Of a stretch of DNA of 64,000 nt, positions 24,148 through 57,786 are shown in pieces. Each line of letters begins with the position of its first letter. Positions within the stretch are counted from its first letter, which is position 1. Location: positions 156,868 to 220,867 of IMG/VR virus record IMGVR_UViG_3300032322_001765; one strand, 5' to 3'. A program made the position numbers and the translations under genes. The notes below the pieces were generated by a model that ran no database searches, was not told the DNA's origin, and saw only the letters and a program-made list of their open reading frames with translations.

Positions 24148-24223
24148 TGGGGATTCGCCAAGTTGGTAAGGCACCGGATTTTGATTCCGGCATTCGGTGG
24201 TTCGAGTCCATCATCCCCAGCCA
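24148..24223 (+). tRNA. tRNA-Gln(TTG)
   Basis: Cloverleaf, CCGGA-TTTTGAT-TCCGG, encoded CCA. Confidence 0.95.
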
Positions 24224-24225
24224 TT

Positions 24226-24302
24226 GCCCCAATAACTCAGTGGACTAGAGTACTGTGCTACGAACGCAGGAGTCGGAGGTTCGAATCCTTCTTGGGGTAC
24301 CA
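24226..24302 (+). tRNA. tRNA-Arg(ACG)
   Basis: Loop CTACGAA, GGTTCGAATCC, CCA. Confidence 0.95.
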
Positions 24303-24308
24303 TTCTTG

Positions 24309-24337
24309 TTGACTAAATACGTTTGCTTGTTTAATAT
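24309..24337 (+). promoter_or_regulatory. Sigma70-type promoter for pqqA
   Basis: TTGACT-17nt-TAATAT. Confidence 0.6.
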
Positions 24338-24362
24338 GAGCGTTCTTATACAGGAGGTAAAC

Positions 24363-24434
24363 ATGTGGACTAAACCTACAGCACAGGATATGCGTTTTGG
24401 TTTTGAAATCACTATGTATATTGCAAATCGCTAA
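24363..24434 (+). CDS. pqqA: PQQ precursor peptide PqqA (23 aa)
   Basis: MWTKPTAQDMRFGFEITMYIANR with ExxxY core; GGAGGT SD; below the ORF-track length cutoff. Confidence 0.95.
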   Translation: MWTKPTAQDMRFGFEITMYIANR

Positions 24435-24452
24435 TATACAACATTGATGGGC

Positions 24453-24479
24453 AAAAAGGTAGCTATGCTACCTTTTTTT
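24453..24479 (+). terminator. Intrinsic terminator after pqqA
   Basis: AAAAAGGTAGC-TAT-GCTACCTTTTT(TT). Confidence 0.85.
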
Positions 24480-24481
24480 AC

Positions 24482-24557
24482 GGTAGAGTAGCATAGCGGC
24501 TAATGCGCCACCTTCATACGGTGTTTATCGTCAGTTCGAGTCTGACCTCTACTACCA
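24482..24557 (+). tRNA. tRNA with CAT anticodon (Met, possibly Ile2)
   Basis: Loop TTCATAC, T arm GTCAG-TTCGAGT-CTGAC, CCA. Confidence 0.85.
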
Positions 24558-24571
24558 ATAAAGGAAATATT

Positions 24572-24724
24572 ATGCCAATGTATGAAACTACTGTTAGAAC
24601 GCCGAGCGGCGAAGAAAAGAAAAGAATTTATGCGGATACACCGCAAGAGGCTAAAAAACTTTTTGAACAATTGTATGGTGGGCCTAGAGCAGTTCCATAT
24701 ATACCAAAAATAGTACCAAGTTAG
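24572..24724 (+). CDS. Hypothetical protein (50 aa)
   Basis: AAGGA SD, MPMYETTVRTPSGEEKKR; ORF-track start 24503 lies inside a tRNA. Confidence 0.7.
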   Translation: MPMYETTVRTPSGEEKKRIYADTPQEAKKLFEQLYGGPRAVPYIPKIVPS

Positions 24725-24797
24725 GGGGATTAGTTAAATGGGATAACAACGGCTTTGCAAGCCGTGATTAACAGTTCGATTCTGTTATCCTCCACCA
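24724..24797 (+). tRNA. tRNA-Ala(TGC)
   Basis: ACGGC-TTTGCAA-GCCGT; G3.U70 acceptor pair; CCA. Confidence 0.9.
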
Positions 24798-24808
24798 AAA
24801 CATTCAAT

Positions 24809-24885
24809 GGTGATGGTAGCTCAGTTGGTAGAGTCCCGGATTGTGATTCCGGTCGTCGTGGGTTCGAGCCCCATCCTTCACCCCA
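24809..24885 (+). tRNA. tRNA-His(GTG)
   Basis: G-1/C73, loop TTGTGAT, CCA. Confidence 0.95.
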
Positions 24886-24888
24886 AAT

Positions 24889-24966
24889 ACCCTGATGGCG
24901 AAATTGGTAGACGCACCAGTTTAAGGTACTGGATTGTTGAGAGTTCGAGTCTCTCTCAGGGCACCA
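24889..24966 (+). tRNA. Atypical tRNA-Leu(AAG)
   Basis: CCAGT-TTAAGGT-ACTGG; Leu-type D loop; A1.C72 mismatch; short variable region; CCA. Confidence 0.7.
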
Positions 24967-24968
24967 AT

Positions 24969-25044
24969 GCCGTTCAAGCTAACCAAGTGGAAGCGTCTGT
25001 CTGAAGAACAGAATGGCCTGGAGCGTTACCAGGGGTCGGCACCA
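24969..25044 (+). tRNA. tRNA-Phe(GAA) with non-canonical T loop
   Basis: TCTGT-CTGAAGA-ACAGA; T arm CCTGG-AGCGTTA-CCAGG; CCA. Confidence 0.75.
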
Positions 25045-25048
25045 ATTT

Positions 25049-25077
25049 TTGACAAATATTAAATTATTTGTTATACT
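25049..25077 (+). promoter_or_regulatory. Sigma70-type promoter
   Basis: TTGACA-17nt-TATACT. Confidence 0.8.
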
Positions 25078-25081
25078 TGAT

Positions 25082-25156
25082 GAGTCCTTAGTCTAATGGA
25101 TAAGATACTGCATTCCGATTGCATTGATGCAGGTTCGATTCCTGCAGGACTTACCA
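25082..25156 (+). tRNA. tRNA-Arg(CCG)
   Basis: TGCA-TTCCGAT-TGCA, GGTTCGATTCC, CCA. Confidence 0.85.
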
Positions 25157-25188
25157 AAAGTAAATACTATTTTATATAGGAGATTAAA

Positions 25189-25749
25189 ATGTCTGTCTTA
25201 GCTTTGGATATCACAGGAATCCCTAGACAATGGGTTTCAAACGATATTGCAATCACTTACCATGCAAAAGAGATGGTAGCATGGAGTATTGGTGAAATTG
25301 TTGCACGTTATCGTGGTGGCATTCAAAATAATGGCAAAATGAGTTATCTTGAAACTCCTAGTATTATTGCCATTAAAGGACATGGTTTTGATCCTAGCAA
25401 ACATGGCAAAGTTGCACTTACTAATAAAACATTGTTTGGGCGTGACCGTCATGTATGTGCATACTGCGGCGGACATTTTTCGAATTCAAACAACTTAAGT
25501 CGTGACCATATTTTACCTAAAAGCAGAGGTGGTGCAAACAATTGGATGAATGTGGTTACTGCATGTACTCCATGCAATAACAAGAAAGACAACAAAACAT
25601 TGAAAGAGGCACGAATGGAATTGCTTTATGTTCCCTATGAGCCAAATTTCTTTGAAGCAATGATTTTGCAAAATAGAAATATTCTCGCTGATCAAATGGA
25701 ATACTTAATGACAGGTGTACCAAAACATAGCAGAATTTTGTTATCATAA
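25189..25749 (+). CDS. HNH endonuclease
   Basis: RDRHVCAYCG, DHILPKSRGG, NVVTACTPCN. Confidence 0.9.
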   Translation: MSVLALDITGIPRQWVSNDIAITYHAKEMVAWSIGEIVARYRGGIQNNGKMSYLETPSIIAIKGHGFDPSKHGKVALTNKTLFGRDRHVCAYCGGHFSNSNNLSRDHILPKSRGGANNWMNVVTACTPCNNKKDNKTLKEARMELLYVPYEPNFFEAMILQNRNILADQMEYLMTGVPKHSRILLS

Positions 25750-25757
25750 TAAAAACA

Positions 25758-25786
25758 TTGACATAAAATGTTTTGTGTGATATGAT
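25758..25786 (+). promoter_or_regulatory. Sigma70-type promoter
   Basis: TTGACA-17nt-TATGAT. Confidence 0.8.
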
Positions 25787-25805
25787 TGCGTTTAAATAGT
25801 TTTAT

Positions 25806-25880
25806 GCTGGCGTGGCTCAACGGTAGAGCAACGGATTTGTAATCCGTAGGTTGAGGGTTCGATTCCTTTCGCCAGCACCA
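25806..25880 (+). tRNA. tRNA-Thr(TGT)
   Basis: ACGGA-TTTGTAA-TCCGT, CCA. Confidence 0.95.
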
Positions 25881-25886
25881 TTTTAT

Positions 25887-25962
25887 TGTCTAGTAGCTCA
25901 GTCGGTAGAGCAGGTGACTGTTAATCACCCTGTCGTAGGTTCGATCCCTACCTAGACAGCCA
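25887..25962 (+). tRNA. tRNA-Asn(GTT)
   Basis: GGTGA-CTGTTAA-TCACC, CCA. Confidence 0.95.
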
Positions 25963-25986
25963 AACTTCTTGTATTATAGGTATATT

Positions 25987-26181
25987 ATGTTAGTTACTGA
26001 AGCACAAGGTTACAAACTTTTCTGTGAAACACAAAAAATTGATTTCCCGCCGGACACCTATTATGTTCGTATTTTTACCAAATATGAATTTGCTAAGAAC
26101 TCTGATGCGGAGCAAACTAAGATTGAACTTTTTCTAACTAAAAGTGAATTAGACAATCTTAGACAAATGCTTACTGTCTAA
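25987..26181 (+). CDS. Hypothetical protein
   Basis: MLVTEAQGYKLFC; AGGT SD-like site. Confidence 0.6.
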   Translation: MLVTEAQGYKLFCETQKIDFPPDTYYVRIFTKYEFAKNSDAEQTKIELFLTKSELDNLRQMLTV

Positions 26182-26188
26182 TTAATTT

Positions 26189-26263
26189 CTGGCGTTCGTA
26201 TAAGGGATAATACTACAGACTTCTAATCTGTAAATCCAGGTTCGAGTCCTGGACGCCGGACCA
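26189..26263 (+). tRNA. tRNA-Arg(TCT)
   Basis: ACAGA-CTTCTAA-TCTGT, CCA. Confidence 0.9.
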
Positions 26264-26292
26264 AATTATCAAACTAGCAACAAAAATAATTG

Positions 26293-26321
26293 TTGACGAT
26301 AAATCCTATTTGATGTATAAT
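26293..26321 (+). promoter_or_regulatory. Sigma70-type promoter
   Basis: TTGACG-17nt-TATAAT. Confidence 0.8.
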
Positions 26322-26366
26322 TCTTTTTATCGTAGTTAATATCTTTAACAATTTAATAACATTTAG

Positions 26367-26442
26367 GCACCCATCGTCTAGAGGCCTAGGACATTGCCCT
26401 TTCAAGGCAGTAACACGGGTTCGAATCCCGTTGGGTGTACCA
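26367..26442 (+). tRNA. tRNA-Glu(TTC)
   Basis: Loop CTTTCAA, GGTTCGAATCC, CCA. Confidence 0.95.
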
Positions 26443-26502
26443 GTTAATGGTATAACTAACTGTGATACAAGCACAATATGCTTGGTAGATTATACCATAC
26501 TT

Positions 26503-26579
26503 GCCCACTTAGCTCATTCGGTTAGAGCATCGTCTTGATAAGGCGGGGGTGCTTGGTTCGATTCCAAGAGTGGGCACCA
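26503..26579 (+). tRNA. tRNA-Ile(GAT)
   Basis: Loop TTGATAA, CCA. Confidence 0.95.
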
Positions 26580-26660
26580 TATTGAAGCACATTATTAGTG
26601 ACGCTGGGAAGGACAAGATTCAGCGGTAAATAAATCCTTCATTAGTGTGTTTCAATATGG
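26577..26660 (+). ncRNA. Stem-enclosed RNA containing an H-type pseudoknot
   Basis: CCATATTGAAGCACATTA / TAGTGTGTTTCAATATGG stem; inner CGCTG/CAGCG plus GAAGGA/TCCTTC. Confidence 0.45.
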
Positions 26661-26689
26661 TTGACAATAAATCAGTTTGCTGTTAAACT
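26661..26689 (+). promoter_or_regulatory. Sigma70-type promoter for unknown ncRNA
   Basis: TTGACA-17nt-TAAACT. Confidence 0.75.
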
Positions 26690-26696
26690 AGCGGCA

Positions 26697-26895
26697 AATA
26701 AAGATTCCGGTTACTACTTTCCTGAAAGTAGCGTGTGGCGACGATAATTGACCCGGTGGCAGCAAACCGTTAGCGAGGTAACTCCTCAGGCACTGCTAGG
26801 CAGAATCCCAACTGCACACAGACACGAGAATAAACGGGATGGACAGGGTAACAACTCTGCTAAGGGGCGATGCCTGGAAAACACGTAGCCTTAGC
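26697..26895 (+). ncRNA. Unknown GC-richer structured RNA, copy 1
   Basis: No credible ORF; own promoter; shares GATGGACAGGGTAACAACTC and AAGGGGC...GTAGCCTT hairpin with copy 2; ends approximate. Confidence 0.5.
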
Positions 26896-27022
26896 AATAT
26901 TAGTTTTGCAGTTTGTAAGCACAGAAGCCGGCGCGAGGCATTATGTAACCAAAGCAATAAACAGTAATCACGTGTAAAGCTGTTGAGCGAGGCATATAGT
27001 ATAAACTGCAAAACTAATATTG
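26895..27022. repeat. Perfect 20-bp inverted repeat enclosing 88 nt
   Basis: CAATATTAGTTTTGCAGTTT (26895-26914) / AAACTGCAAAACTAATATTG (27003-27022). Confidence 0.9.
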
Positions 27023-27098
27023 GCTTCATAGTTCAGTTGGTTAGAACGCCGCCCTGTCACGGCGGAGGTCAGGGGTTCGAGTCCCCTTGAGGTCGCCA
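27022..27098 (+). tRNA. tRNA-Asp(GTC)
   Basis: CCGCC-CTGTCAC-GGCGG, CCA. Confidence 0.95.
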
Positions 27099-27180
27099 AA
27101 CATAGGGTAAACTTCTACTTGCACTTAATTTGAACTTAAAGTAAAATATAGGTTCTTTAGTTAAGTCATTGGAGAACAGA

Positions 27181-27384
27181 ATGAATTTGAAATTGAAAGC
27201 AGCATTGTATACCTTTCTATATGCATTAACAGGATTAGGTGTAGGATTTGTAGTATCACAACTGCCTACTTGGACAGTAGTAACACTTGTGTGTATTTTT
27301 GGAATTTGTCTAGCATATATTCTTATACATACAGGACTAAAATACGATGAAGCAGTAAAAGAAATAAGTAAGAAGTACGAATAA
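27181..27384 (+). CDS. Small membrane protein
   Basis: GGAGA SD; two hydrophobic segments. Confidence 0.65.
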   Translation: MNLKLKAALYTFLYALTGLGVGFVVSQLPTWTVVTLVCIFGICLAYILIHTGLKYDEAVKEISKKYE

Positions 27385-27392
27385 TGTAGTTA

Positions 27393-27483
27393 GGAGCGTT
27401 GGCCGAGTGGTCGAAGGCAGTGGTTTGCTAAACCATCGTACATCAAAAATGTACCATTAGTTCGAATCTAATACGCTCCGCCA
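27393..27483 (+). tRNA. tRNA-Ser(GCT)
   Basis: Loop TTGCTAA, long variable arm, CCA. Confidence 0.95.
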
Positions 27484-27510
27484 GTTTTCATATTTTATTT
27501 AGGAAAGAAA

Positions 27511-27690
27511 ATGAAATATCTTAATTTTGTATTACCCGTTATAATCACACTACTTTCAATAATTGGAATTATTGCTAGTTATGGTGCAGGTAACGATTCT
27601 GCACTTAGTGCATATGTTGTAGCATTATCAGGTTGGATGGTAATCGCAACGGATGAAGTTATTAAATTTATTGATAGTCGAAGAAAATAA
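27511..27690 (+). CDS. Small membrane protein (59 aa)
   Basis: AGGA SD; MKYLNFVLPVIITLLSIIGIIA...; two hydrophobic segments. Confidence 0.6.
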   Translation: MKYLNFVLPVIITLLSIIGIIASYGAGNDSALSAYVVALSGWMVIATDEVIKFIDSRRK

Positions 27691-27696
27691 ATTTAT

Positions 27697-27774
27697 GCAA
27701 CGGTGGCAGAGAGGCCCAATGCAAGAGTCTGCAAAACTCTAAAGCCGTCAGTTCGAATCTGACCCGTTGCTCCA
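27697..27774 (+). tRNA. tRNA-Cys(GCA)
   Basis: AGAGT-CTGCAAA-ACTCT, U73, CCA. Confidence 0.95.
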
Positions 27775-27977
27775 AGTATCCCGCAGGCCCTTCTGCGCTA
27801 TGAAAGGGGGTATATTGGCTTCACCATAACGCCAGGGCTCTTACGTTGATAGCCTCAAAGCCCGCTTGACATGGGTGATAGAAAAAACGTAGGTGGGTAT
27901 CACACCTTGCCAGAAGTAAATGTGATGGACAGGGTAACAACTCAGTAAGGGGCTTATGGGAATAAGTAGCCTTACAC
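27775..27977 (+). ncRNA. Unknown structured RNA, copy 2
   Basis: Identical 20-mer at 27924-27943 and covarying terminal hairpin; ends approximate. Confidence 0.5.
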
Positions 27978-28029
27978 TTTATACTATAGGAGATCCTGTT
28001 ATGGATAGTGACAAGAGTGACAAGATAAT

Positions 28030-28105
28030 GCGGGCATAGCTCAGTCGGTAGAGCAGTAGACTTTTAATCTATTGGTCGTGGGTTCGAATCCCCCTGCCCG
28101 TACCA
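28030..28105 (+). tRNA. tRNA-Lys(TTT)
   Basis: Loop CTTTTAA, CCA. Confidence 0.95.
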
Positions 28106-28183
28106 TATAAAAACACATTCGCTTATATTTTAACGGCTTGCAAGGCACGGGCGTATAAGAGTATTGAGTGTGTTTCTATATGG
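28103..28183 (+). ncRNA. Stem-enclosed RNA (third member of the AGTRTGTTTC stem family)
   Basis: CCATATAAAAACACATTC / GAGTGTGTTTCTATATGG. Confidence 0.45.
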
Positions 28184-28189
28184 TTTATT

Positions 28190-28274
28190 GGGGATGCGGC
28201 TAAGTTAGAGAGTGGCGGCGGACTGTAAATCCGTTCTTTCGGGTGAGTAGGTGCGAATCCTTCCATCCCCACCA
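28190..28274 (+). tRNA. tRNA-Tyr(GTA)
   Basis: Loop CTGTAAA, long variable arm, T loop TGCGAAT, CCA. Confidence 0.9.
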
Positions 28275-28280
28275 ATTAAT

Positions 28281-28354
28281 TCCGGTGTAGTATAATGGCA
28301 GTGCGACGGTCTCCAAAACCGTTAGTGGGAGTTCGATTCTCTCCACCGGAGCCA
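28281..28354 (+). tRNA. tRNA-Trp(CCA)
   Basis: ACGGT-CTCCAAA-ACCGT, CCA. Confidence 0.95.
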
Positions 28355-28355
28355 G

Positions 28356-28646
28356 TTATTTAGTGAATCGTCTAATATGTGTAGATATAGGAGTATTATA
28401 TTGTTCTGTACCGCGATCACCGCCTACTGTTAAACGTAAGTTTACATCAACGGTTTTTGCGTAATAGTTTACATAATTGGCAATTTTACTACTTGTTGTT
28501 CTAATTAGACAAATACCGGCATTATTACAAACTATGTAGGTAGTTATTCCGAATTCGTCTTTGTCTATGAATAGCATAACATATTTATTAATATTTGGGC
28601 AACTAATAGTTGCATTATTAATTTGTTTGATGTATAATCTATACAT
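28356..28646 (-). CDS. Hypothetical protein
   Basis: 96-aa ORF filling the gap between two tRNAs on the opposite strand. Confidence 0.45.
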   Translation of the reverse strand: MYRLYIKQINNATISCPNINKYVMLFIDKDEFGITTYIVCNNAGICLIRTTSSKIANYVNYYAKTVDVNLRLTVGGDRGTEQYNTPISTHIRRFTK

Positions 28647-28657
28647 AAGTTAGAAAT

Positions 28658-28734
28658 GCCTCTGTAGCTCAATCGGTCAGAGCAGCGGACTCATAATCCG
28701 TTGGTTAGGGGTTCGAGTCCCTTCGGAGGCACCA
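28658..28734 (+). tRNA. tRNA with CAT anticodon, probably Ile2 (lysidine)
   Basis: GCGGA-CTCATAA-TCCGT, paired 1:72, CCA. Confidence 0.85.
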
Positions 28735-28742
28735 GGTATTAT

Positions 28743-28816
28743 GCGGGATTAGTTTAATGGTAAAACGAAAGCCTTCCAAGCTCTAGTTATCAGTTCGATT
28801 CTGATATCCCGCTCCA
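28743..28816 (+). tRNA. tRNA-Gly(TCC)
   Basis: Loop CTTCCAA, U73, CCA. Confidence 0.95.
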
Positions 28817-28825
28817 AGTTAGAAT

Positions 28826-28909
28826 GCCCGGGTGGTGAAATGGTAGACACAAAGGACTTAAAATCCTTCGCCGCAAGGCGTGCCGGTTCGAGTCCGGCTT
28901 CGGGTACCA
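28826..28909 (+). tRNA. tRNA-Leu(TAA)
   Basis: AAGGA-CTTAAAA-TCCTT, long variable arm, CCA. Confidence 0.95.
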
Positions 28910-28917
28910 AGTAACAT

Positions 28918-29000
28918 GCGCATATGGCGAAATTGGTAGACGCGCCAGATTTAGGTTCTGGTCTCAACGGGTGGGGGTTCGAGTCCCTCTATGCGCACCA
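28918..29000 (+). tRNA. tRNA-Leu(TAG)
   Basis: CCAGA-TTTAGGT-TCTGG, CCA. Confidence 0.95.
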
Positions 29001-29033
29001 CTGTTCTCTTTTATAAAGATAAATAATTGTACT

Positions 29034-29207
29034 ATGGCACAATTAAAAATCTTCATTAACGACAAACTATACAAAACAGTACCATTAGATACTGAAAAAT
29101 ATGAGCCTTCTTGGTATTGGCCTCAAATTAAGGCTGATAAAGAAGCCGGTTTACTAAATTCTTTTAACATTGAAGAATCAATGAAAGTAGAATTTAGAAA
29201 AATATAA
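29034..29207 (+). CDS. Hypothetical protein
   Basis: MAQLKIFINDK; TAAATA 8 nt upstream; ORF-track start overlaps a tRNA. Confidence 0.6.
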   Translation: MAQLKIFINDKLYKTVPLDTEKYEPSWYWPQIKADKEAGLLNSFNIEESMKVEFRKI

Positions 29208-29285
29208 ACCATAATAGTTTGTATACTTTCAATATTGCAATGATATGCTCACGCATATCAAAAAAGCAAGCCTATTTTTTTAGCT

Positions 29286-29293
29286 TATAAATA
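29286..29293 (+). promoter_or_regulatory. T4-type late promoter
   Basis: Perfect TATAAATA upstream of the fMet-like tRNA. Confidence 0.7.
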
Positions 29294-29311
29294 AGTCGTA
29301 GGACATTAAGA

Positions 29312-29384
29312 CGCGGGTTAGGGAAGAGGTCATCCCGTTAGGCTCATAACCTGAAGATCGTTGGTTCAAATCCAGCACCCGCAT
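29312..29384 (+). tRNA. Initiator-like tRNA-fMet(CAT), atypical, no encoded CCA
   Basis: CGCGGGT/ACCCGCA with C1.A72; TTAGG-CTCATAA-CCTGA; flanked by 10-bp extension stem. Confidence 0.8.
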
Positions 29385-29402
29385 CTTAGTGTCTTACAAT
29401 AA

Positions 29403-29481
29403 CCGGGTGTAGCTTAGTCTGGCTTAAAGCGCCTGCTTTGGGAGCAGGAGATCGTGAGTTCGAATCCCACTTCCCGGACCA
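29403..29481 (+). tRNA. tRNA-Pro(TGG)
   Basis: CCTGC-TTTGGGA-GCAGG, CCA. Confidence 0.95.
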
Positions 29482-29500
29482 ATTCTTTTTAAGGTGATAT

Positions 29501-29638
29501 ATGGCTAAGCAAGTTGGAGTAAAAGAACGTAAGAAGGTAGTCAAATTAACTTGTCAGGGAGGAAGTAAACCCAAAACAAGTACTATGAATAAGGATTTAA
29601 AAAGAAGTTACAAGAAGTATAGAGGACAAGGTAAATAG
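29501..29638 (+). CDS. Small basic protein (45 aa)
   Basis: AAGGTG SD; MAKQVGVKERKK...TMNKDLKRSYKKYRGQGK; C-terminal YRGQG is a pattern I recall from T4-like phage small proteins. Confidence 0.7.
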   Translation: MAKQVGVKERKKVVKLTCQGGSKPKTSTMNKDLKRSYKKYRGQGK

Positions 29639-29712
29639 CATCGTTAGTTCAGCGGTAGAATCCCTGCCTTACAAGCAGGTTGTCGTTGGTTCGAATCCAG
29701 CACGATGCACCA
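29638..29712 (+). tRNA. tRNA-Val(TAC)
   Basis: CCTGC-CTTACAA-GCAGG, CCA. Confidence 0.95.
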
Positions 29713-29718
29713 AGTATT

Positions 29719-29793
29719 GCGGGTGTAATTCAGGGGTAGAATGTTTGCTTGCCAAGCAAAATGTCAGGAGTTCGAATCTCCTCACCCGCTCCA
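29719..29793 (+). tRNA. tRNA-Gly(GCC)
   Basis: TTTGC-TTGCCAA-GCAAA, CCA. Confidence 0.95.
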
Positions 29794-29809
29794 ATTTTAT
29801 ATAATTTTT

Positions 29810-31050
29810 ATGGCACATCAACAACAATTTGATTTTGTACAAAGAGTAAAGAATCGCTATCCAATAAATTTTTTTCAGAAAAAAGTTTTAGAAATTGGTA
29901 GCTTAAACATTAATGGCACAATAAGAGATTTTTTCAACTATTGTGATTATTTGGGAGTTGATGTAGGACAAGGTCCATGCGTCGATATAGTTTGTGAAGG
30001 TCAAAATGTAGATCATCCCGACAACACTTATGACACAGTTGCAAGTTGTGAATGTTTTGAACACAACCCTCATTGGGTAGAAACTTTTCAAAATATGTAT
30101 CGTATGACTAAGCCGGGTGGTTTAGTTTTTATGAGTTGTGCAACTACAGGTAGACCTGAACATGGTACAACACGTACTAGTCCTAGTGATAGTCCGTTAA
30201 CAATTGGTATAGGTTGGGATTACTATAAAAATTTAACTGAACAAGATTTTAGAGATAACTTTAACATTGATGAAATGTTCAGTGAATATAAATTTGAAGT
30301 TGGTACATCACATCCTGATTTATATTTTTATGGTGTTAAAAAAACAAGTGATGTAATTGATTTTAGAAAATACTTTACTGAAAAGTATTACGACAGTAAT
30401 TGGTTAAAAACTGCAAAAGAAACTTATGACAATAACGATCCTTACCCGCATCTTGTCATAGATGATTTTTTACCAGTTGACGTAATGGAAAAAGTTTTAA
30501 ATTCTTTCCCTCAACCCGGCGACTTAGATTGGTGGGAATTCAAGAATGATAACGAAATAAAATTAGGCAGTAGAAAAGAAATTCAATTACCGCAAGTAAC
30601 AAGAAATGTATGTGCAGAATTAAATTCTGGCTATGTGTTAGATTGGTTAGAGTATTTAACCAGTGTACCTGGGCTTATTGCTGATACAAGATTGTTTGGT
30701 GGTGGGTTGCATCAAATTGTGCGTGGTGGAAAATTAAACATCCATGTAGATTTTAATATTGAACCACATACAAAATTACGTAGGCGACTTAATGTTCTAA
30801 TCTATCTTAACAAAGATTGGAAAGAAGAATACGAAGGTTATTTAGAATTGTGGGACAAAACAAAAACACAATGTGTAAAAAAGATAGCGCCCGTTTTTAA
30901 TCGTTGTGTAATTTTTAATACTAATGATACTTCATGGCATGGGCATCCTACTCCATTAAATACGCCCGAACATATTACAAGAAAAAGTTTAGCCATGTAT
31001 TATTACTCTGTCGATACAGAGAACGTAAAAGTTCATTCAACCATTTATTA

Positions 31051-31051
<1 letters not shown>
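29810..31051 (+). CDS. Methyltransferase fused to Fe(II)/2OG oxygenase
   Basis: N: VLEIGSLNING...CECFEH; C: GGGLHQI...IHVDFN...WHGHP; start moved to MAHQQQ because the track start lies in tRNA-Gly. Confidence 0.8.
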
Positions 31052-31140
<89 letters not shown>

Positions 31141-31180
31141 ACTATAGCTCTATTTTGTAAAATAATCACAGGAGGTAATT

Positions 31181-31741
31181 ATGCCAGCAAGTTTTTTAGT
31201 AAGCGACACACATTTCGGCCATGCTGGCGTATGCCGTTTCCTACGTGATGACGGTACGAAACTACGTCCATGGGATAACCCAGATGAAATGGATGAAGAA
31301 ATGGTAAAGCGTTGGAATGAAACAGTTCGACCCAATGATAAAGTTTATCATTTAGGAGATGTTGTGATTAACCGTAAAGCACTTGCCACACTTAGTCGCC
31401 TTAATGGTGATAAGGTGCTTATCAAAGGTAATCATGATATTTTTAAATTAGAAGAATACACACAATACTTTCGTGATGTCCGAGGCTACCATGTTATGAA
31501 TGGTATGATACTAAGTCATATACCTGTGCATGAAGAAAGTTTAGCACGATTTGGGACAAACATTCATGGACATCTGCATTATAACCGTGTAAAGAAAGAT
31601 GGTGTCATTGATGTTAGATATCATTGTGTTTGTGTAGAACAAACAGATTACCGTCCAATACTGTTTGAACATGTTATCAAACGTATTCAAGAAGAAGGTG
31701 GCACAGTTGGCTTTAAAAACGGTAACGGCCCTATCATGTAA
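31181..31741 (+). CDS. Calcineurin-like metallophosphoesterase
   Basis: SDTHFGH, HLGD, GNHD, SH, HGHLH. Confidence 0.9.
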   Translation: MPASFLVSDTHFGHAGVCRFLRDDGTKLRPWDNPDEMDEEMVKRWNETVRPNDKVYHLGDVVINRKALATLSRLNGDKVLIKGNHDIFKLEEYTQYFRDVRGYHVMNGMILSHIPVHEESLARFGTNIHGHLHYNRVKKDGVIDVRYHCVCVEQTDYRPILFEHVIKRIQEEGGTVGFKNGNGPIM

Positions 31742-31797
31742 TTTATGATAGGACCTTTTTTAGCATAAGTATCTTACTACATTTTTAAGGAGGCATC

Positions 31798-32979
31798 ATG
31801 GCTGGCCGCAATTTTCTATTTGTTCCAGGACCAACAAATATTCCCGATAGAGTTTTAAGAGCAATGGTAGTATCTATGGAAGATCATAGGTCACCTGATT
31901 TCCCTTCACTAACTCTTGAAATACTGCCAAAGTTAAAAAAACTTTTTCGCACAACAACAGGTACACCGTTTATATTCCCGTCTAGCGGCACAGGCTGTTG
32001 GGAAGCAGCACTTACAAATACTTTATCACCTGGCGACAAAATATTAGCAGCACGATTTGGACAATTCAGTCATCTATGGATTGAGATGTGCCAAAGGTTG
32101 GGATTTGAAGTCGAAATAGTTGATTGTGAATGGGGCACTGGTGTACCACTTGACATTTACAGAGATAAATTAGAAGCAGATACCGAACACAAAATTAAAG
32201 CTGTGTTAGTTACTCACAATGAAACAGCAACTGGTGTCACTTCAGATGTTGCAGGCGTACGCCGTATAATGAATAATGCAAATCATCCTGCAATGATATT
32301 TGTCGATGCAGTCTCATCATTTGCTAGTATTGATTTAAGATTTGATGAGTGGGGTATTGATATGTGTGTAACGGGATCTCAAAAAGGTCTTATGTTACCT
32401 GCAGGACTAGGTATTCTATGTGCAAGTGAAAGGGCATTAGAAATGCGCCACCTTGCAAAATCTAAAAGAGCATATTTTGATTTAAACGATATGTTAAATT
32501 CAAATAGAAACGGATACTTCCCGTATACCCCTGCTCTTTCGTTGTTATATGGATTAAAAGAATCACTCTGTATACTTGAGGAAGAAGGTTTAGATAATGT
32601 TATCAACAGACATAACTATCTTGCTTCGGGGGTACGTGCAGCAGTAGAAGGATGGGGACTAAAACTTTGTGCTAAGGATCCTAAATGGAATAGTAACACT
32701 GTTTCAGCTATTATGGTTCCGGAAGGCATTGACGCTGCAAAAGTAATATCAGCAGCATATAATCATTATAACTTATCTTTAGGTGCAGGATTAAATAAAG
32801 TTGCAGGCAAATTATTTAGAATTGGGCATTTAGGTGACATGAATGAGGTGCATTTGTTAGCCGCGATAGCAGGTGCAGAAATGGCCATGTTGGACGTTGG
32901 TATAAAAATAGAATCAGGTAGTGGGGTTGCCGCTGCAATTAATTATTATCGAATGCACAAAGGAACAGTCAATGTATAA
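31798..32979 (+). CDS. sgaA: Serine-glyoxylate / alanine-glyoxylate aminotransferase (class V PLP)
   Basis: MAGRNFLFVPGPTNIPDRVLRAM, SSGTGCWEAA, HNETATG, DAVSS, GSQKG, RIGHLG. Confidence 0.85.
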   Translation: MAGRNFLFVPGPTNIPDRVLRAMVVSMEDHRSPDFPSLTLEILPKLKKLFRTTTGTPFIFPSSGTGCWEAALTNTLSPGDKILAARFGQFSHLWIEMCQRLGFEVEIVDCEWGTGVPLDIYRDKLEADTEHKIKAVLVTHNETATGVTSDVAGVRRIMNNANHPAMIFVDAVSSFASIDLRFDEWGIDMCVTGSQKGLMLPAGLGILCASERALEMRHLAKSKRAYFDLNDMLNSNRNGYFPYTPALSLLYGLKESLCILEEEGLDNVINRHNYLASGVRAAVEGWGLKLCAKDPKWNSNTVSAIMVPEGIDAAKVISAAYNHYNLSLGAGLNKVAGKLFRIGHLGDMNEVHLLAAIAGAEMAMLDVGIKIESGSGVAAAINYYRMHKGTVNV

Positions 32980-33046
32980 AGTAGGTGAAGCAATTTTTTA
33001 TAGTTTAGTAGCAGTTTTTATTGTGGCATTTTTACTTACTATTTAA
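32972..33046 (+). CDS. Small hydrophobic peptide (24 aa)
   Basis: MYKVGEAIFYSLVAVFIVAFLLTI; AAGGA SD-like site. Confidence 0.4.
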   Translation: MYKVGEAIFYSLVAVFIVAFLLTI

Positions 33047-33049
33047 TAT

Positions 33050-33358
33050 TGTTGTATGAAACAATCCGAAACAGGTTCTGGACGGCGGTTCGATTCCGCC
33101 CATCTCCACCAAATGCAATCTTGGGATGATTATTTTCCGCCTTTGAATTTGTGGAACTATAGTATCAGTTGGCAATGGAAGATTTCATTTGATGGGGATG
33201 ATCAGGTCTCGACAGGGTCAAGAGTACGAGAGTGGACAACACGGTAGGCGATGACCGTAAATCAAGCAAAACTATAACTGCAAACGCAGCTAATGATGAG
33301 GTATACGCTCTAGCAGCGTGATCTCCGGGGCAACTATGCCTTGTTACCAAAAATAGTT
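33050..33358 (+). ncRNA. ssrA: Circularly permuted (two-piece) tmRNA; tag ANAANDEVYALAA
   Basis: 3' end GGTTCGATTCC...CATCTCCACCA (ends 33111) precedes 5' end GGGGATG (33194); G3.U70; tag ORF 33280-33321; outer ends approximate. Confidence 0.9.
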
Positions 33359-33359
33359 T

Positions 33360-33384
33360 AAAAGGCTACTTCGGTAGCCTTTTT
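33360..33384 (+). terminator. Intrinsic terminator
   Basis: AAAAGGCTAC-TTCG-GTAGCCTTTTT. Confidence 0.9.
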
Positions 33385-33403
33385 CCATTATAAATATACT
33401 ATT

Positions 33404-33988
33404 ATGATAGTTTATATACACGGCGCCAGCGCAACTAAAGATAGCTTTTCTTACATTAGACAATTTGTTAGAGATAATATAGAGTTACCTGATATCGCAT
33501 TAGAGTATAACAGTAGTGATGGGTTTGATTATAATATAGGCACTATGTTTGGTAGATTGGATGATGCTGAAAAACTATTTTTCGTTTCGCATAGTTTAGG
33601 TGGCATATACGCATTGCATTTAGCAAATCATTATAAAGATAGAACAATCGGTGGCGTTTCACTAAGTACTCCATACGGTGGATGTAGACAAGCAGATTTT
33701 GCTAGATATTTTTTACCTTTTAATAAGTTAATGAAAGATATTGGAACAATGTCAGATCCAATGATAGAGGCAAAGCGTTTACCTGCTCCTAAAAATTGGA
33801 CTAATGTTGTCACAACAAGAGGAGATAGTCCTTGGATACAAGAACCAAATGATGGAGTGGTTACTATTGAAAGCATGAAGTATCGTGCAGATTTTGAATT
33901 GGTTGAGGCAAATATTAACCATTATGAAGTTGTATTAAATCCAAACATTGTTGAACTTATTTTAGATAGAATTAAAAAAGCAATTTAA
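33404..33988 (+). CDS. Alpha/beta hydrolase
   Basis: YIHG, SHSLGG nucleophile elbow, NDGVV, distal H. Confidence 0.8.
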   Translation: MIVYIHGASATKDSFSYIRQFVRDNIELPDIALEYNSSDGFDYNIGTMFGRLDDAEKLFFVSHSLGGIYALHLANHYKDRTIGGVSLSTPYGGCRQADFARYFLPFNKLMKDIGTMSDPMIEAKRLPAPKNWTNVVTTRGDSPWIQEPNDGVVTIESMKYRADFELVEANINHYEVVLNPNIVELILDRIKKAI

Positions 33989-34012
33989 CCAAAACTCCAT
34001 TTATTTCTAATT

Positions 34013-34030
34013 TTGTAACATATCTGTAAT
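34013..34030 (+). promoter_or_regulatory. Pho box upstream of pstS
   Basis: TTGTAAC-ATAT-CTGTAAT, 11-nt period direct repeat matching the PhoB consensus. Confidence 0.7.
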
Positions 34031-34083
34031 ATTCTAACTTCTAAATATTTTTGTACACATGTACATTTTATCGGAGACAGAGT

Positions 34084-35106
34084 ATGAAAAAAATATTTGC
34101 ATTATTGGCGTTTGTGTCAACATTTGCATCAGCAGCAGAATTCACCGGAGCAGGAGCAACATTCCCGTTCCCAATCTATGCTAAGTGGGCTGAAGCATAC
34201 AAAGCACAAACTGGCATTGGTCTAAATTATCAATCAATTGGTAGTGGCGGTGGTATTCGTCAAATCAAAGCAAAGACGGTTGACTTTGGCGCAAGTGATA
34301 TGCCATTGAAAAAAGAAGAACTTGACAAAGAAGGTCTTGTACAATTTCCAGCAATCATCGGTGGTGTTGTACCAGTATTCAACCTAGACGGTATTGATGC
34401 TGGTAAATTAAAACTTACTCCAGATGTGATTGCTAATATTCATTTAGGTAAAATTAACAAATGGAATGACAAAGCAATTGCTGAATTAAATCCAGGAGTT
34501 GCTCTTCCTGCTATGAACATTACTGTAGTTCATCGTGCAGACGGTTCAGGTACTACATTTATCTGGACAAACTTTTTAGGCAAAGCAAATGCTGAATTTC
34601 AAAAAACAGTAGGCGAAGGCACAGCAGTTAAATGGCCAGTTGGTGTAGGCGGTAAAGGCAACGAAGGTGTAGCAGCACAAGTGCAAAGAATCAAAGGTGC
34701 ATTTGGTTATGTTGAGTATGCTTATGCTAAAAGAAACAAGATTCCTTATGCAGCGTTGAAAAATCGTGATGGTAACTTTGTACTACCAGATGATACTACA
34801 TTCAAAGCAGCCGCAGCTAATGCTGATTGGAACAATGCGCCAGGGATGTATTTGTTACTCACATGGCAGACAGGTAAAGATGCATGGCCAGCAACAGGTG
34901 CAAGTTTCATTCTAATGCACAAGCAACAGGCAGATACATTAACGGGTCGTGCAGTTCTCAAGTTCTTTGACTGGTCATACAAGAATGGTGGCCAAATGTC
35001 AACTGAGTTAGAGTATGTTCACATGCCAGCTGATGTAATTAAATTAGTTCAGGAAAATTGGAAGAAGGATTTCCGTGGTCCTGATGGTAACCCAATTTGG
35101 AAATAA
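34084..35106 (+). CDS. pstS: Phosphate ABC transporter substrate-binding protein PstS
   Basis: Signal peptide; GAGATFP, YQSIGSGGG, FGASD, RADGSGTT, GKGNEGV; GGAGA SD. Confidence 0.95.
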   Translation: MKKIFALLAFVSTFASAAEFTGAGATFPFPIYAKWAEAYKAQTGIGLNYQSIGSGGGIRQIKAKTVDFGASDMPLKKEELDKEGLVQFPAIIGGVVPVFNLDGIDAGKLKLTPDVIANIHLGKINKWNDKAIAELNPGVALPAMNITVVHRADGSGTTFIWTNFLGKANAEFQKTVGEGTAVKWPVGVGGKGNEGVAAQVQRIKGAFGYVEYAYAKRNKIPYAALKNRDGNFVLPDDTTFKAAAANADWNNAPGMYLLLTWQTGKDAWPATGASFILMHKQQADTLTGRAVLKFFDWSYKNGGQMSTELEYVHMPADVIKLVQENWKKDFRGPDGNPIWK

Positions 35107-35110
35107 ACAC

Positions 35111-35139
35111 TTGACAACCGTTAACACTGATGATACAAT
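35111..35139 (+). promoter_or_regulatory. Sigma70-type promoter overlapping an 11-bp inverted repeat
   Basis: TTGACA-17nt-TACAAT; AACCGTTAACA/TGTTAACGGTT plus T tract. Confidence 0.7.
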
Positions 35140-35166
35140 GTTAACGGTTTTTTATAAGGACACACA

Positions 35167-36573
35167 ATGAAAACATTAGGTAAATTAACTTTGGCTATTT
35201 CTTTAGCCTTCTCAGTTCCAGCATATGCTGATGAATATTTGAGTACATTAAATATTTTGCGAGACAAAGGTATCATTACAAAACAAGAGTATGATACTAA
35301 AGTACGTGATTATGAAGAAAAAGCAGAAAACAAAAAATTTGCAGAGCAACGAATCGACAAAGATGTTAGCGATTCAGTCAAATTTAGACAAGCAAGAGCA
35401 AACGACGGATCAGTTACAGAAAACGGATTTGGACTTAAATCCAAAGATGGAAACACGACTGCCCAATTTACAGGTCGATTACATATGGACTATCGTCAGT
35501 ACGACCCCAATTATGGTACAGGTCAAACCACGGATTCGTATCAGAACCTAGCAGAAGTTCGTCGTGCTAGATTTGGCGTACGTGGTCAATTTCAAAAAGA
35601 TTTCAAGTATCAACTACTTGCAAACTTTGGTAATGACGTAGGTGCTTCTGCTACTTCCAGTACCGCAGATGAGATGTGGGTTAACTATGCAGCCAATCCT
35701 GAAATGCAATTTCAGTTTGGTTTATTCAAAATGCCATTCAGCTTAGAGCAATTAACAAGTTCTAATAATATTGATTTTATGGAGCGTAGTTTAATTGGTA
35801 ACACTGATGGTGAGTTCATTCCTGCAAAAGAAACTGGATTCATGGTTCATGGTATACCTAAACCAGGTCTATTGTATCAAGTAGCATTAAGCCGTGGTCG
35901 TGCAAACAAAGATGCAACTAACGATGGTTTTGACTATATTGGTCGTGTAGTAACAAACGTTGCTGAACTACAAGGTAGCAAAGCATATGTATTACATTTA
36001 GGCGCTGCATACAGTATGGGTGATATCAAAGGTGGTGTTACACCAGCTAGTGGTAGAACAGAGGCTCGCACACAGTCAGCATGGTTTACAGGTCCTGCAT
36101 TATCTGGTACCACGACAAGAACTCGCCAAGGATTAGAAGCAGCATTTGCTTACAATGGTTTAAAGTTACAAGGCGAACAGTTTAATTTCAAGTATGATCC
36201 TACAACAGGTTCCGATCAAGAAATTAAAGGTTACTACGTACAAGCATTGTATAACTTAACAGGCGAAAGTCACAATTATAAAGACGGTATCTTTAACTGG
36301 ATTAAACCAAACAATCCAACAGATAAAGGTGGTCGCGGTGCATGGCAAGTTGGTGTGCGTATGAGTGAGTTTGATGCAAGTGGTATCACTGTTGTAACAG
36401 GCAAATCTAATCGTGCTACTGCCATGACATACGGAATTACTTGGTTTGCAACTGACAATTTACGCTTCATGCTCAACTATGTTGACACAAAGTTTGATTC
36501 GTTAGTAGGAAGTTCAGGTAGCCGTGTAAATGGTGACAGAGCAGTTATGTTTAGAAGCCAATTAAGTTTCTAA
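35167..36573 (+). CDS. Phosphate-selective porin, OprO/OprP family
   Basis: Signal peptide; GRLHMD, RRARFGVRG, GLFKMPFSLEQLTSS...FMERS, RYSE-like RMSEFD, C-terminal F. Confidence 0.85.
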   Translation: MKTLGKLTLAISLAFSVPAYADEYLSTLNILRDKGIITKQEYDTKVRDYEEKAENKKFAEQRIDKDVSDSVKFRQARANDGSVTENGFGLKSKDGNTTAQFTGRLHMDYRQYDPNYGTGQTTDSYQNLAEVRRARFGVRGQFQKDFKYQLLANFGNDVGASATSSTADEMWVNYAANPEMQFQFGLFKMPFSLEQLTSSNNIDFMERSLIGNTDGEFIPAKETGFMVHGIPKPGLLYQVALSRGRANKDATNDGFDYIGRVVTNVAELQGSKAYVLHLGAAYSMGDIKGGVTPASGRTEARTQSAWFTGPALSGTTTRTRQGLEAAFAYNGLKLQGEQFNFKYDPTTGSDQEIKGYYVQALYNLTGESHNYKDGIFNWIKPNNPTDKGGRGAWQVGVRMSEFDASGITVVTGKSNRATAMTYGITWFATDNLRFMLNYVDTKFDSLVGSSGSRVNGDRAVMFRSQLSF

Positions 36574-36591
36574 AATTATTTACTGTAAAAC

Positions 36592-36618
36592 AAAAAAGGC
36601 ATTTATATGCCTTTTTTT
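36592..36618 (+). terminator. Intrinsic terminator
   Basis: AAAAAAGGCAT-TTAT-ATGCCTTTTTTT. Confidence 0.85.
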
Positions 36619-36624
36619 GTGGCT

Positions 36625-36642
36625 TTGTAATCGTCTTGTAAC
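36625..36642 (+). promoter_or_regulatory. Second Pho box
   Basis: TTGTAAT-CGTC-TTGTAAC; same 11-nt distance to TAAATA as the pstS box. Confidence 0.6.
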
Positions 36643-36664
36643 ATAAGATATTCTAAATAGTTTT

Positions 36665-56114: not shown

Positions 56115-56411
56115 ATGACACCTGAATACATCCGAAAGTGGGAACACATCCTTGAAGATGTTGAAAAAAGTAAGGTCCCTGTACAATTTATTAAAAAAAT
56201 TGTAGTAAAGATGGTAGGCAAAAAACAGCATACTATTAATATACAACACTTACTTAAACAAGGATTGAGTCCTGATGAGGTTGAAGAAGTTGTTAGCAGA
56301 AAACTTAATGAATTAGATCCACTAATTACAAGTTTTGAGTTTTTATTAAATGTAGAAACTATTGCTGAAACGGTTCAACCAGAAACTGATAGAATTCTTG
56401 GGAACTTATGA
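56115..56411 (+). CDS. Hypothetical protein
   Basis: 98-aa ORF. Confidence 0.7.
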   Translation: MTPEYIRKWEHILEDVEKSKVPVQFIKKIVVKMVGKKQHTINIQHLLKQGLSPDEVEEVVSRKLNELDPLITSFEFLLNVETIAETVQPETDRILGNL

Positions 56412-56872
56412 AATTAATTATCGCCTGTGATAAAAATGGTGGTATAGGATATCAAAATAAATTGCCTTGGAATAAAATTCAGGGCGATTTACCAAGATTT
56501 AAAAAATTGACTGAAGGTCAAGTAGTTGTTATGGGCAAACATACTTGGGAAAGCCTGCCGGTCAAACCACTTCCTAATAGACTTAATATCGTCATTACAA
56601 CAACAGAATCGATGAAATCTATTACTGTTCCTAAAAAAGTTATCGTAACCGATGATATTGAAAGAGTTAAAGATTATGATATTTGGTTAATAGGAGGGGC
56701 AAAATTAGTTGAAAGTTGTTGGAGTAGAATTAATGAGATACACCTTACAAAAACTTTTGCCGAATATACTTGTGATAGATTTATTGATTTGTTATACTTA
56801 GAACAAAATTTTATCTGTGAGCATACCGAAACATACGCAGACCATACGTACACAATTTGGAAAAGACGATGA
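56408..56872 (+). CDS. folA: Dihydrofolate reductase
   Basis: GGIG...LPW...DLPRFKKLT...VVMGKHTWES...LPNRLNIV, LIGGA. Confidence 0.95.
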   Translation: MKLIIACDKNGGIGYQNKLPWNKIQGDLPRFKKLTEGQVVVMGKHTWESLPVKPLPNRLNIVITTTESMKSITVPKKVIVTDDIERVKDYDIWLIGGAKLVESCWSRINEIHLTKTFAEYTCDRFIDLLYLEQNFICEHTETYADHTYTIWKRR

Positions 56873-57786
56873 AGCAATATCACGACCTACTGGAATACAT
56901 TTTAAAAAACGGAGAAGAGAAAGATGATAGAACTGGCGTTGGTACTATTAGTACTTTTGGACATCAGCTTCGCTTTGATTTGCGTTTGGGATTTCCTGCC
57001 ATTACAACTAAAAAGTTGGCTTGGAAATCTTGCGTAGGTGAGTTGCTATGGTTCATTGAAGGATCAAGCGACGAACGTAGATTAGCACAAATTACACATG
57101 GTACAAAAGATGGGACTGTAACTATTTGGACTCCTAATGCACTCGCACCATATTGGAAACCTAAAGCAAATTTTGAAGGTGATTTAGGGCGAGTGTATGG
57201 AGTGCAATGGCGACATTGGAGAAGCGTTAAGAAAAGAGAAGTAGATGGAGCCTTCAAGGATAGTTTCGGTGTGTCATATCGTCGTATTGGCAACGATGTT
57301 GAAATTAAAGAAATTGACCAACTTAAGCTATTGATAGAAGGAATTAAAACTGATCCAAACGGTCGCAGACACATTTTGAATGCATGGAACGTGGGTGAAC
57401 TGGATCAAATGGCACTACCACCATGTCACGTAATGAGTCAATTTTATGTAAACAAGAATAAAGAACTTAGTTGCCATATGTATCAACGTAGTGTAGATGT
57501 TTTCTTAGGTCTTCCCTTTAACATTGCAAGCTACGCATTGTTAACTCATATGATAGCACAGGTGTGTAATTTAAAAGTTGGTGAATTAATCATTAGTACA
57601 GGTGACACACATATCTATAAAGATCATATAGAGCAAGTAAAAGAACAGTTGAGTAGACAAGAATATCCCTTACCAACATTAATGCTCACACACGACATAG
57701 AGGATATATCGCAATTTACCATGAACGATATTTACTTAGATAATTATCAGAGTCATGGTCCATTAAAGGCTACAATGGCAGTATGA
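56869..57786 (+). CDS. thyA: Thymidylate synthase
   Basis: DRTGVGT, TTKK, GDLGRVYG.QW, RRHI..AWN, PPCH, YQRSVD...PFNIASY, HIY. Confidence 0.97.
   Translation: MKQYHDLLEYILKNGEEKDDRTGVGTISTFGHQLRFDLRLGFPAITTKKLAWKSCVGELLWFIEGSSDERRLAQITHGTKDGTVTIWTPNALAPYWKPKANFEGDLGRVYGVQWRHWRSVKKREVDGAFKDSFGVSYRRIGNDVEIKEIDQLKLLIEGIKTDPNGRRHILNAWNVGELDQMALPPCHVMSQFYVNKNKELSCHMYQRSVDVFLGLPFNIASYALLTHMIAQVCNLKVGELIISTGDTHIYKDHIEQVKEQLSRQEYPLPTLMLTHDIEDISQFTMNDIYLDNYQSHGPLKATMAV

Follow-up and report, generated by a model that had tools for sequence, protein, structure and literature searches.

Serine-glyoxylate aminotransferase of the Methylobacterium extorquens type (SgaA, EC 2.6.1.45), with orthologs in the Burkholderiales, is a class V aminotransferase dependent on pyridoxal phosphate (PLP). 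In cellular genomes, whose contexts were read by clustering flanking open reading frames (ORFs) and by Pfam, its gene stands among those of the serine cycle: glyA (serine hydroxymethyltransferase)-sgaA-hprA (2-hydroxyacid dehydrogenase)-fhs (formate-tetrahydrofolate ligase) in Oxalobacteraceae MsE-6; sgaA-hprA-mtdA-fch-mtkA-mtkB in Methylobacterium; and malyl-CoA lyase-sgaA-mtkAB in Granulosicoccus. Described relatives include the photorespiratory Arabidopsis enzyme AGT1 (SGAT; structures 6PK1 and 6PK3) and BhcA (NF045640), a sister family with the same active-site residues. T4-like viruses of Lake Baikal carry methanol dehydrogenase together with pqqA, in a report that mentions neither an aminotransferase nor glyoxylate (PMC7678222). 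Here we describe an sgaA gene in the window, a stretch of 64,000 nucleotides that makes up bases 156868-220867 of the 220,867-bp IMG/VR virus record IMGVR_UViG_3300032322_001765.

The phage product shares the fold and the catalytic and PLP residues of cellular SgaA, and its gene is nested inside that group. However, the phage copy stands alone, whereas cellular sgaA has glyA, hprA, fhs or mtdA-fch-mtkAB as neighbours; its protein is about 30 amino acids shorter at the C-terminus than the 420-amino-acid Burkholderiales SgaA; and its codon composition is AT-rich, like the phage genome. Both this phage (GC 35%) and the Lake Baikal viruses are low-GC freshwater myoviruses with pqqA and host-derived carbon genes, but neither this phage nor six relatives yielded a methanol dehydrogenase dependent on pyrroloquinoline quinone (PQQ). 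The finding adds no new kind of system but one more host-derived auxiliary metabolic gene (AMG), coding for a well-known enzyme. Within the literature searched, a phage SgaA appears to be undescribed. Searches for glyoxylate aminotransferase, glyoxylate transaminase or K00830 together with phage, viral or AMG found no paper on one, and a pairing with Polynucleobacter found nothing, both at a coverage short of the whole literature.

Family and active site of the enzyme

The gene and its immediate signals are as follows (window positions here and below, unless the record is named).

31798..32979, + strand: sgaA, intact, predicted to encode an SgaA-type class V (PLP) aminotransferase of 393 amino acids (ORF, PF00266, 6pk1, tree placement)
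31787..31793, + strand: Shine-Dalgarno sequence AAGGAGG, 4 nt 5' of the sgaA ATG (read from the sequence)
31730..31752, + strand: terminator-like hairpin with a T-run, closing the upstream 186-amino-acid gene (consensus scan and sequence; a pattern match only)

By ORF call and translation, sgaA is a single uninterrupted frame, 393 codons long before its stop. Its product begins MAGRNFLFVPGPTNIPDRVLRAM, in exact agreement with the SgaA start motif quoted in an earlier, sequence-only reading of this DNA, which had described an intact class V aminotransferase. The upstream gene ends at the predicted hairpin, so simple co-transcription of the two genes is probably not to be expected. The product matches Pfam family PF00266 (Aminotran_5) over residues 6-317 at 89.3 bits (gathering score 21.5; E 3.3e-25), which places it in the class V fold. 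Its best solved relative is Arabidopsis AGT1 (6pk1/6pk3), with residues 3-387 aligned on 8-393 at E 5.6e-144, a match far above chance.

Within class V, the active-site residues examined are shared by SgaA and BhcA; donor assignment therefore rests on phylogeny, the synteny of the cellular sisters and the score against hidden Markov models. The best NCBIfam match was to the BhcA model NF045640, at 595.6 bits, and this top rank is what speaks for an aspartate-glyoxylate aminotransferase of the beta-hydroxyaspartate cycle. The score nevertheless lies under the 650-bit cutoff. In a calibration with proteins from serine-cycle gene clusters (Methylobacterium, Hansschlegelia, Polynucleobacter, Oxalobacteraceae, Methylibium, Paraburkholderia, Gemmobacter and Granulosicoccus), all scored 547-637, likewise under the cutoff, whereas true BhcA from 61 Paracoccaceae genomes formed a clearly separate set at 689-760 bits. 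The phage protein, inside the 547-637 range, thus falls with SgaA and not with BhcA.

The phylogeny agrees. In an IQ-TREE analysis of 52 proteins (LG+C20+F+G4; support given as UFBoot/SH-aLRT), a long branch with 100/100 support sets BhcA apart. The phage sequences fall into a single clade (100/99), which nests at 100/100 with freshwater Burkholderiales: Polynucleobacter, Oxalobacteraceae and Comamonadaceae. Identities follow the same order, at 76-78% to SgaA of the Polynucleobacter/Oxalobacteraceae type, 59-66% to the Methylobacterium type and 50.5-54% to BhcA. Pfam searches of the window proteins found no neighbour with a domain matching bhcB, bhcC or bhcD. By score, clade and neighbours alike, a BhcA-type enzyme is therefore a very improbable identification. 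Tree and cellular synteny together indicate that the phage gene is orthologous to the sgaA genes of serine-cycle clusters.

Other class V families deserve mention because a phosphate island (PstS-like protein, OprO/P porin and metallophosphoesterase) adjoins sgaA, and PhnW and SerC are also class V enzymes; a phosphonate or phosphoserine aminotransferase working with that island might be imagined. The product scores 82-136 bits on the PhnW models (cutoffs 296-401) and 25-36 bits on the SerC models (cutoffs 253-444), and the tree places it firmly within SgaA, which makes such an enzyme hardly plausible. The sequence-only reading had called the protein a full-length SgaA-type enzyme and had named grouping with phosphoserine or other aminotransferases as the outcome that would overturn it; scores and tree instead place it outside the phosphoserine, phosphonate and BhcA families. 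By family, then, the gene is assigned on sequence evidence to the SgaA type.

Active-site residues were mapped from the published description of the Arabidopsis AGT1 site (PMC6797613) through a HMMER alignment. All 18 PLP and substrate residues checked are in the state of cellular serine-cycle SgaA, and 15 of the 18 are identical to AGT1. Conserved in the phage protein are Pro10, Gly11, Arg31', Ser63-Gly64-Thr65, Trp68, Phe90, Thr143, Asp170, Val172, Gln195, Lys196 (the PLP lysine), Thr244', Pro245' and Arg341; this set, from Pro10 to Arg341, is invariant across about 94 short-type homologs (defined below). The PLP and carboxylate contacts of AGT1 (Lys201, Asp175, Thr148, Gln200, Thr68-Gly69-Thr70, Thr250', Arg347 and Arg36') have their phage counterparts in K196, D170, T143, Q195, S63-G64-T65, T244, R341 and R31. 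The two proteins can be aligned end to end, with Lys201, Asp175, Thr148, Gln200, Arg347, Arg36', Thr250' and Pro251 conserved, but the phage protein lacks the plant-specific C-terminal helix and has His30 in place of plant Tyr35', the residue that touches the serine hydroxyl. Histidine is found here in all bacterial SgaA and BhcA proteins examined, so His30 reflects the bacterial condition rather than a change made in the phage.

A different amino donor has to be weighed at this point. Glyoxylate would still be the acceptor, with alanine, asparagine, aspartate or glutamate as the main donor, and the enzyme would have a general glycine-making or glyoxylate-detoxifying role in place of one in the serine cycle. 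The family is promiscuous: Arabidopsis AGT1 accepts serine, alanine and asparagine (PMC6797613). Moreover, the phage sgaA lies apart from hprA and glyA, and its island holds stress and nutrient genes (AhpC, a carboxymuconolactone-decarboxylase-family (CMD) protein, PstS and porin). Against this, no active-site residue differs from cellular serine-cycle SgaA, and the phage branch inside the SgaA clade is short, with no sign of a change in specificity. We regard this alternative as unlikely.

Together, these comparisons suggest that the phage probably encodes a functional SgaA-family aminotransferase (a PLP-dependent, dimeric class V enzyme), in its enzymatic identity and in the direction of its reaction.

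Phage location, ancestry and selection

The 220,867-bp record is a genuine jumbo myovirus. It encodes a portal protein (phrog_213, 3e-109), a major head protein (phrog_138, 2e-99), virion structural proteins and an SbcC-like nuclease, which bears out the earlier claim that sgaA is phage-borne. In its head protein, identity to jumbo myoviruses of the PA5oct, 121Q/Rak2 and Vibrio 2.275.O types, whose genomes measure 285-470 kb, is 64-68%. CheckV estimates completeness at about 61%; the expected full genome, near 360 kb, fits the size range of those myoviruses. GC content in the window is even, at 30-41% (genome mean 35.2%). When a phage collection was searched with the window DNA, only tRNA genes matched; tblastn of the SgaA protein in that collection found only distant class V aminotransferases, at no more than 32% identity.

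Because the record is an incomplete metagenome assembly, host contamination, a chimeric assembly or a recent, decaying passenger gene must be considered. All are barely credible here. Phage genes and a tRNA array flank sgaA on both sides within one contig of even GC. An identical gene lies on a contig of another IMG sample number (L002), and near-identical pieces of the locus occur in lake and freshwater metagenomes of at least eight other studies. In four lake runs with such pieces (X2-X5, from four studies, one of them the probable source study), the mapped reads show no indels inside sgaA. Third-position GC (GC3) of the window copy is 24%, which fits the phage and no donor, against 44-47% in the nearest cellular genes and an overall GC of 47-70% in donor-type loci. 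Finally, the phage copies form a clade of their own under strong purifying selection.

That clade is distinctive. A word-index protein search found about 90 copies of a short type, 387-393 amino acids long and 75-99% identical, whereas cellular Burkholderiales SgaA has 420 amino acids. All 16 of the IMG/VR loci fall in the short-type clade. Of the short copies, all whose surroundings could be read are on phage contigs, and every unlabelled member inspected has phage-like surroundings. One member, P0004, lies on a 132,546-bp contig (JGI sample 3300059473) that is syntenic with the window and carries BPL_N, sgaA, PstS, porin, metallophosphoesterase, GT2, AhpC and CMD genes. Elsewhere, sgaA adjoins a UvsW-type helicase gene (P0043), sits in a sugar-modification block followed by GGACT (P0034), or stands among small ORFans and a DNA ligase gene (P0036). 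GGACT lies directly 5' of sgaA in related IMG/VR loci and on the P0034 contig; a 352-kb relative has the order PstS-porin-...-GGACT-394-amino-acid gene.

Among phage copies, dN/dS (the ratio of nonsynonymous to synonymous substitution rates) is 0.035-0.11 in pairs where dS is under 1.5, compared with 0.039 for a pair of cellular genes. With monophyly and the phage-like GC3, this indicates selective maintenance in the phage lineage: by these sequence comparisons, sgaA has long resided in phage genomes and is held there by strong purifying selection. It has the marks of a phage auxiliary metabolic gene, being host-derived, carried on a genuine phage genome and flanked by phage genes (the tRNA array, HNH endonucleases, folA and thyA) and present also on related phage contigs of up to 352 kb.

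The tree assigns the donor lineage to freshwater Burkholderiales as a group, not to one exact sister. The present host is best stated as a lake betaproteobacterium, no finer.

Metabolic role

The proposed history and mechanism run as follows. Freshwater jumbo myoviruses of one family (about 350 kb) would have inherited sgaA from an ancestor that took it from a freshwater betaproteobacterium of the Burkholderiales, and selection would have kept the gene since. During infection, the phage SgaA would add capacity for converting glyoxylate and L-serine (or another donor) to glycine and hydroxypyruvate. The remaining steps would fall to the host: GlyA, HprA and Fhs, whose genes flank sgaA in the donor lineage, the glycine cleavage system and the purine enzymes. 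Overall, glyoxylate would be drawn into glycine and, by way of host enzymes, into one-carbon units and three-carbon (C3) compounds for phage nucleotides and protein. Two-carbon (C2) compounds would be salvaged through the phage SgaA step, and the one-carbon units raised through host enzymes would be consumed by the phage folA and thyA products. The sequence data show what the gene is, that it is intact and conserved, that it lies in a phage and from which lineage it came. Which amino donor is used, how large the flux is and which way it runs, when the gene is expressed and how the phage benefits are inferred, and the benefit as stated here is less certain than the identity of the enzyme.

Glycine enters each purine ring whole and feeds protein synthesis. 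Glyoxylate in lakes comes from algal glycolate and from photolysis of dissolved organic matter, and glycolate and glyoxylate are major carbon currencies among algae, sunlight-degraded organic matter and heterotrophic lake bacteria. It is possible, although we hold it only tentatively, that a family of abundant lake jumbo phages redirects the glycolate/glyoxylate pool of infected betaproteobacteria into glycine by means of its own SgaA. If so, infection would measurably shift the fate of algal glycolate and photochemical glyoxylate in freshwater carbon cycling, and SgaA would represent a class of auxiliary gene for C2 metabolism that is new and does not depend on methylotrophy. The conservation of a glyoxylate-to-glycine enzyme in these phages suggests that the supply of glycine, one-carbon units or C2 carbon limits very large phages, and it adds C2 metabolism to the processes that phages may reprogram. 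The gene makes a good test case: the enzyme is well understood, a Methylobacterium sgaA mutant offers a classical complementation host, and there are about 90 natural phage variants.

The sequence-only reading had proposed that sgaA may act together with pqqA, folA and thyA. Pfam confirms all three of these genes, but the pathway as a whole finds only partial support.

24363..24434, + strand: pqqA-like ORF of 23 amino acids between tRNA genes, 7.4 kb upstream of sgaA (PF08042, 37.4 bits against a 21.1 cutoff; motif scan)
56408..56872, + strand: folA, dihydrofolate reductase, 23.4 kb downstream of sgaA (PF00186, E 4.3e-31)
56857..57786, + strand: thyA, thymidylate synthase, overlapping the end of folA (PF00303, E 3.5e-105)

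The four genes do not form one unit. Spacings of 7.4 kb and 23.4 kb separate sgaA from pqqA and folA, and the tRNA array, the phosphate-uptake island and structural genes lie between the four; pqqA is real, but 'near pqqA', as it had been put, was generous. folA and thyA belong to the usual gene stock of large myoviruses, and their presence calls for no link to sgaA. In related phages, pqqA and sgaA do not travel together: a 303-kb relative has pqqA and no sgaA, and a 223-kb relative has sgaA and no pqqA. (Both genomes are incomplete, so these are observations, not proofs of absence.) The earlier suggestion to look for xoxF/mxaF, glyA and hprA came back empty: no methanol or ethanol dehydrogenase that depends on PQQ turned up in the 220-kb record, and tblastn found neither glyA nor hprA there. 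In the six relatives, no PQQ dehydrogenase and no 2-hydroxyacid dehydrogenase (2-Hacid_dh) was found either.

Several further observations weigh against the mechanism set out above. Beyond hprA and glyA, tblastn with at most six members per gene cluster found no fhs, mtdA, fch, mtkAB or mcl in the 220 kb, and purD, gcvT and glcD were likewise not found there; these negatives cover 61% of the genome, with 39% missing. No linkage of the phage sgaA to hprA, glyA or other serine-cycle genes was found. The gene is accessory, not core: among ten larger relatives with head proteins 85-100% identical, it is present in one (223 kb, 63% complete), as an intact gene of 388 amino acids and 72% identity, and the 303-kb relative without it is 86% complete. 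A search of sequencing runs found no RNA run with the sgaA locus. SgaA and BhcA are identical at every active-site residue examined, so the amino donor (serine, aspartate, alanine or asparagine) is not readable from the sequence. Lastly, the tmRNA (transfer-messenger RNA) type encoded next to sgaA was not found in the candidate donor genera (RF01850 was not above cutoff in five genomes, Polynucleobacter-like, Comamonadaceae and Methylibium), and the present host may thus lack the donor's serine-cycle module. Aquatic phages often carry two-piece tmRNAs, which need not match the host (PMC9004378).

On the sequence covered, sgaA stands alone, outside any pathway encoded by the phage. The same gene recurs across a group of related lake phages, and it is therefore probably a functional metabolic gene of borrowed origin. 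That glyoxylate carbon is routed into glycine and one-carbon units is a reasonable supposition, and such routing would rely entirely on enzymes of the host.

On the P0004 contig, a 422-amino-acid D-isomer-specific 2-hydroxyacid dehydrogenase is encoded about 8 kb downstream of sgaA, in the island that shares synteny with the window, and might serve SgaA there as a partner of the HprA or SerA kind.

The pqqA-like ORF has surroundings of its own. At least eight radical-SAM (S-adenosylmethionine) genes occupy one block at 698-20186, on both strands (eight of nine ORFs tested matched Radical_SAM); two have an HMPTM-type zinc ribbon, two have B12-binding domains and three have SPASM. The block stops just before the tRNA array that contains the pqqA-like ORF. 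Given this position, the ORF may be a substrate of the type of ribosomally synthesized and post-translationally modified peptides (RiPPs) for the adjoining radical-SAM/SPASM enzymes, rather than serving methanol oxidation. Four consecutive radical-SAM genes are present in a 372-kb relative.

Genes around sgaA

The wider neighbourhood, with the program or database behind each call, is as follows.

24148..31140, + strand: array of 27 tRNA genes upstream of sgaA, covering all 20 amino acids (ARAGORN)
25189-25749: HNH endonuclease gene interrupting the tRNA array (Pfam)
29741-31051, + strand: SAM methyltransferase fused to a C-terminal 2-oxoglutarate (2OG)-Fe(II) oxygenase, also interrupting the tRNA array (Pfam)
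33007..33386, + strand: permuted (two-piece) tmRNA of the betaproteobacterial type, directly 3' of sgaA (Rfam RF01850, ARAGORN)
34051-35106, + strand: PstS-like phosphate-binding protein (Pfam)
35167-36573, + strand: OprO/P phosphate-selective outer-membrane porin (Pfam)
36665-37474, + strand: metallophosphoesterase (Pfam)
39876-40421, + strand: AhpC/TSA peroxiredoxin (Pfam; the AhpC and CMD pair is also on the P0004 contig)
41158-41670, + strand: carboxymuconolactone-decarboxylase-family (AhpD-like, CMD) protein (Pfam)
42463-43665, - strand: large protein with a C-terminal 2OG-Fe(II) oxygenase domain (Pfam)
51708-52871, + strand: MoxR-like AAA ATPase (Pfam)
53228-54508, + strand: DUF2201 metallopeptidase/VWA protein, after the MoxR-like ATPase (Pfam)

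The tmRNA scores 137.2 bits on RF01850 (gathering score 84) and is called permuted by ARAGORN, with the tag ANAANDEVYALAA. After it, a + strand island encodes the PstS-like protein, the OprO/P porin, the metallophosphoesterase, a GT2 glycosyltransferase, a BPL_N/GATase-like protein, AhpC and the CMD-family protein. The phosphate island also adjoins sgaA on the 132-kb contig of P0004; on the 352-kb relative, it lies about 10 kb from the GGACT gene (the gene that precedes sgaA elsewhere). A phosphate porin on a phage is unusual. Among the 120 best porin homologs listed, identities are 80-88%, and relatives of 346-372 kb also carry PstS and porin. Two long contigs with porin homologs were inspected; both are related jumbo phages, not cells.

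The record also contains giant ORFs, one of them in the window.

Record 26929-44013, - strand: ORF of 5,694 amino acids
Record 118327-131904, + strand: ORF of 4,525 amino acids
Record 74568-82496, + strand: ORF of 2,642 amino acids
Window 45602-51094, - strand: ORF of 1,830 amino acids, without a significant Pfam domain

The pair formed by the MoxR-like ATPase and the DUF2201/VWA protein recurs in the 372-kb relative.

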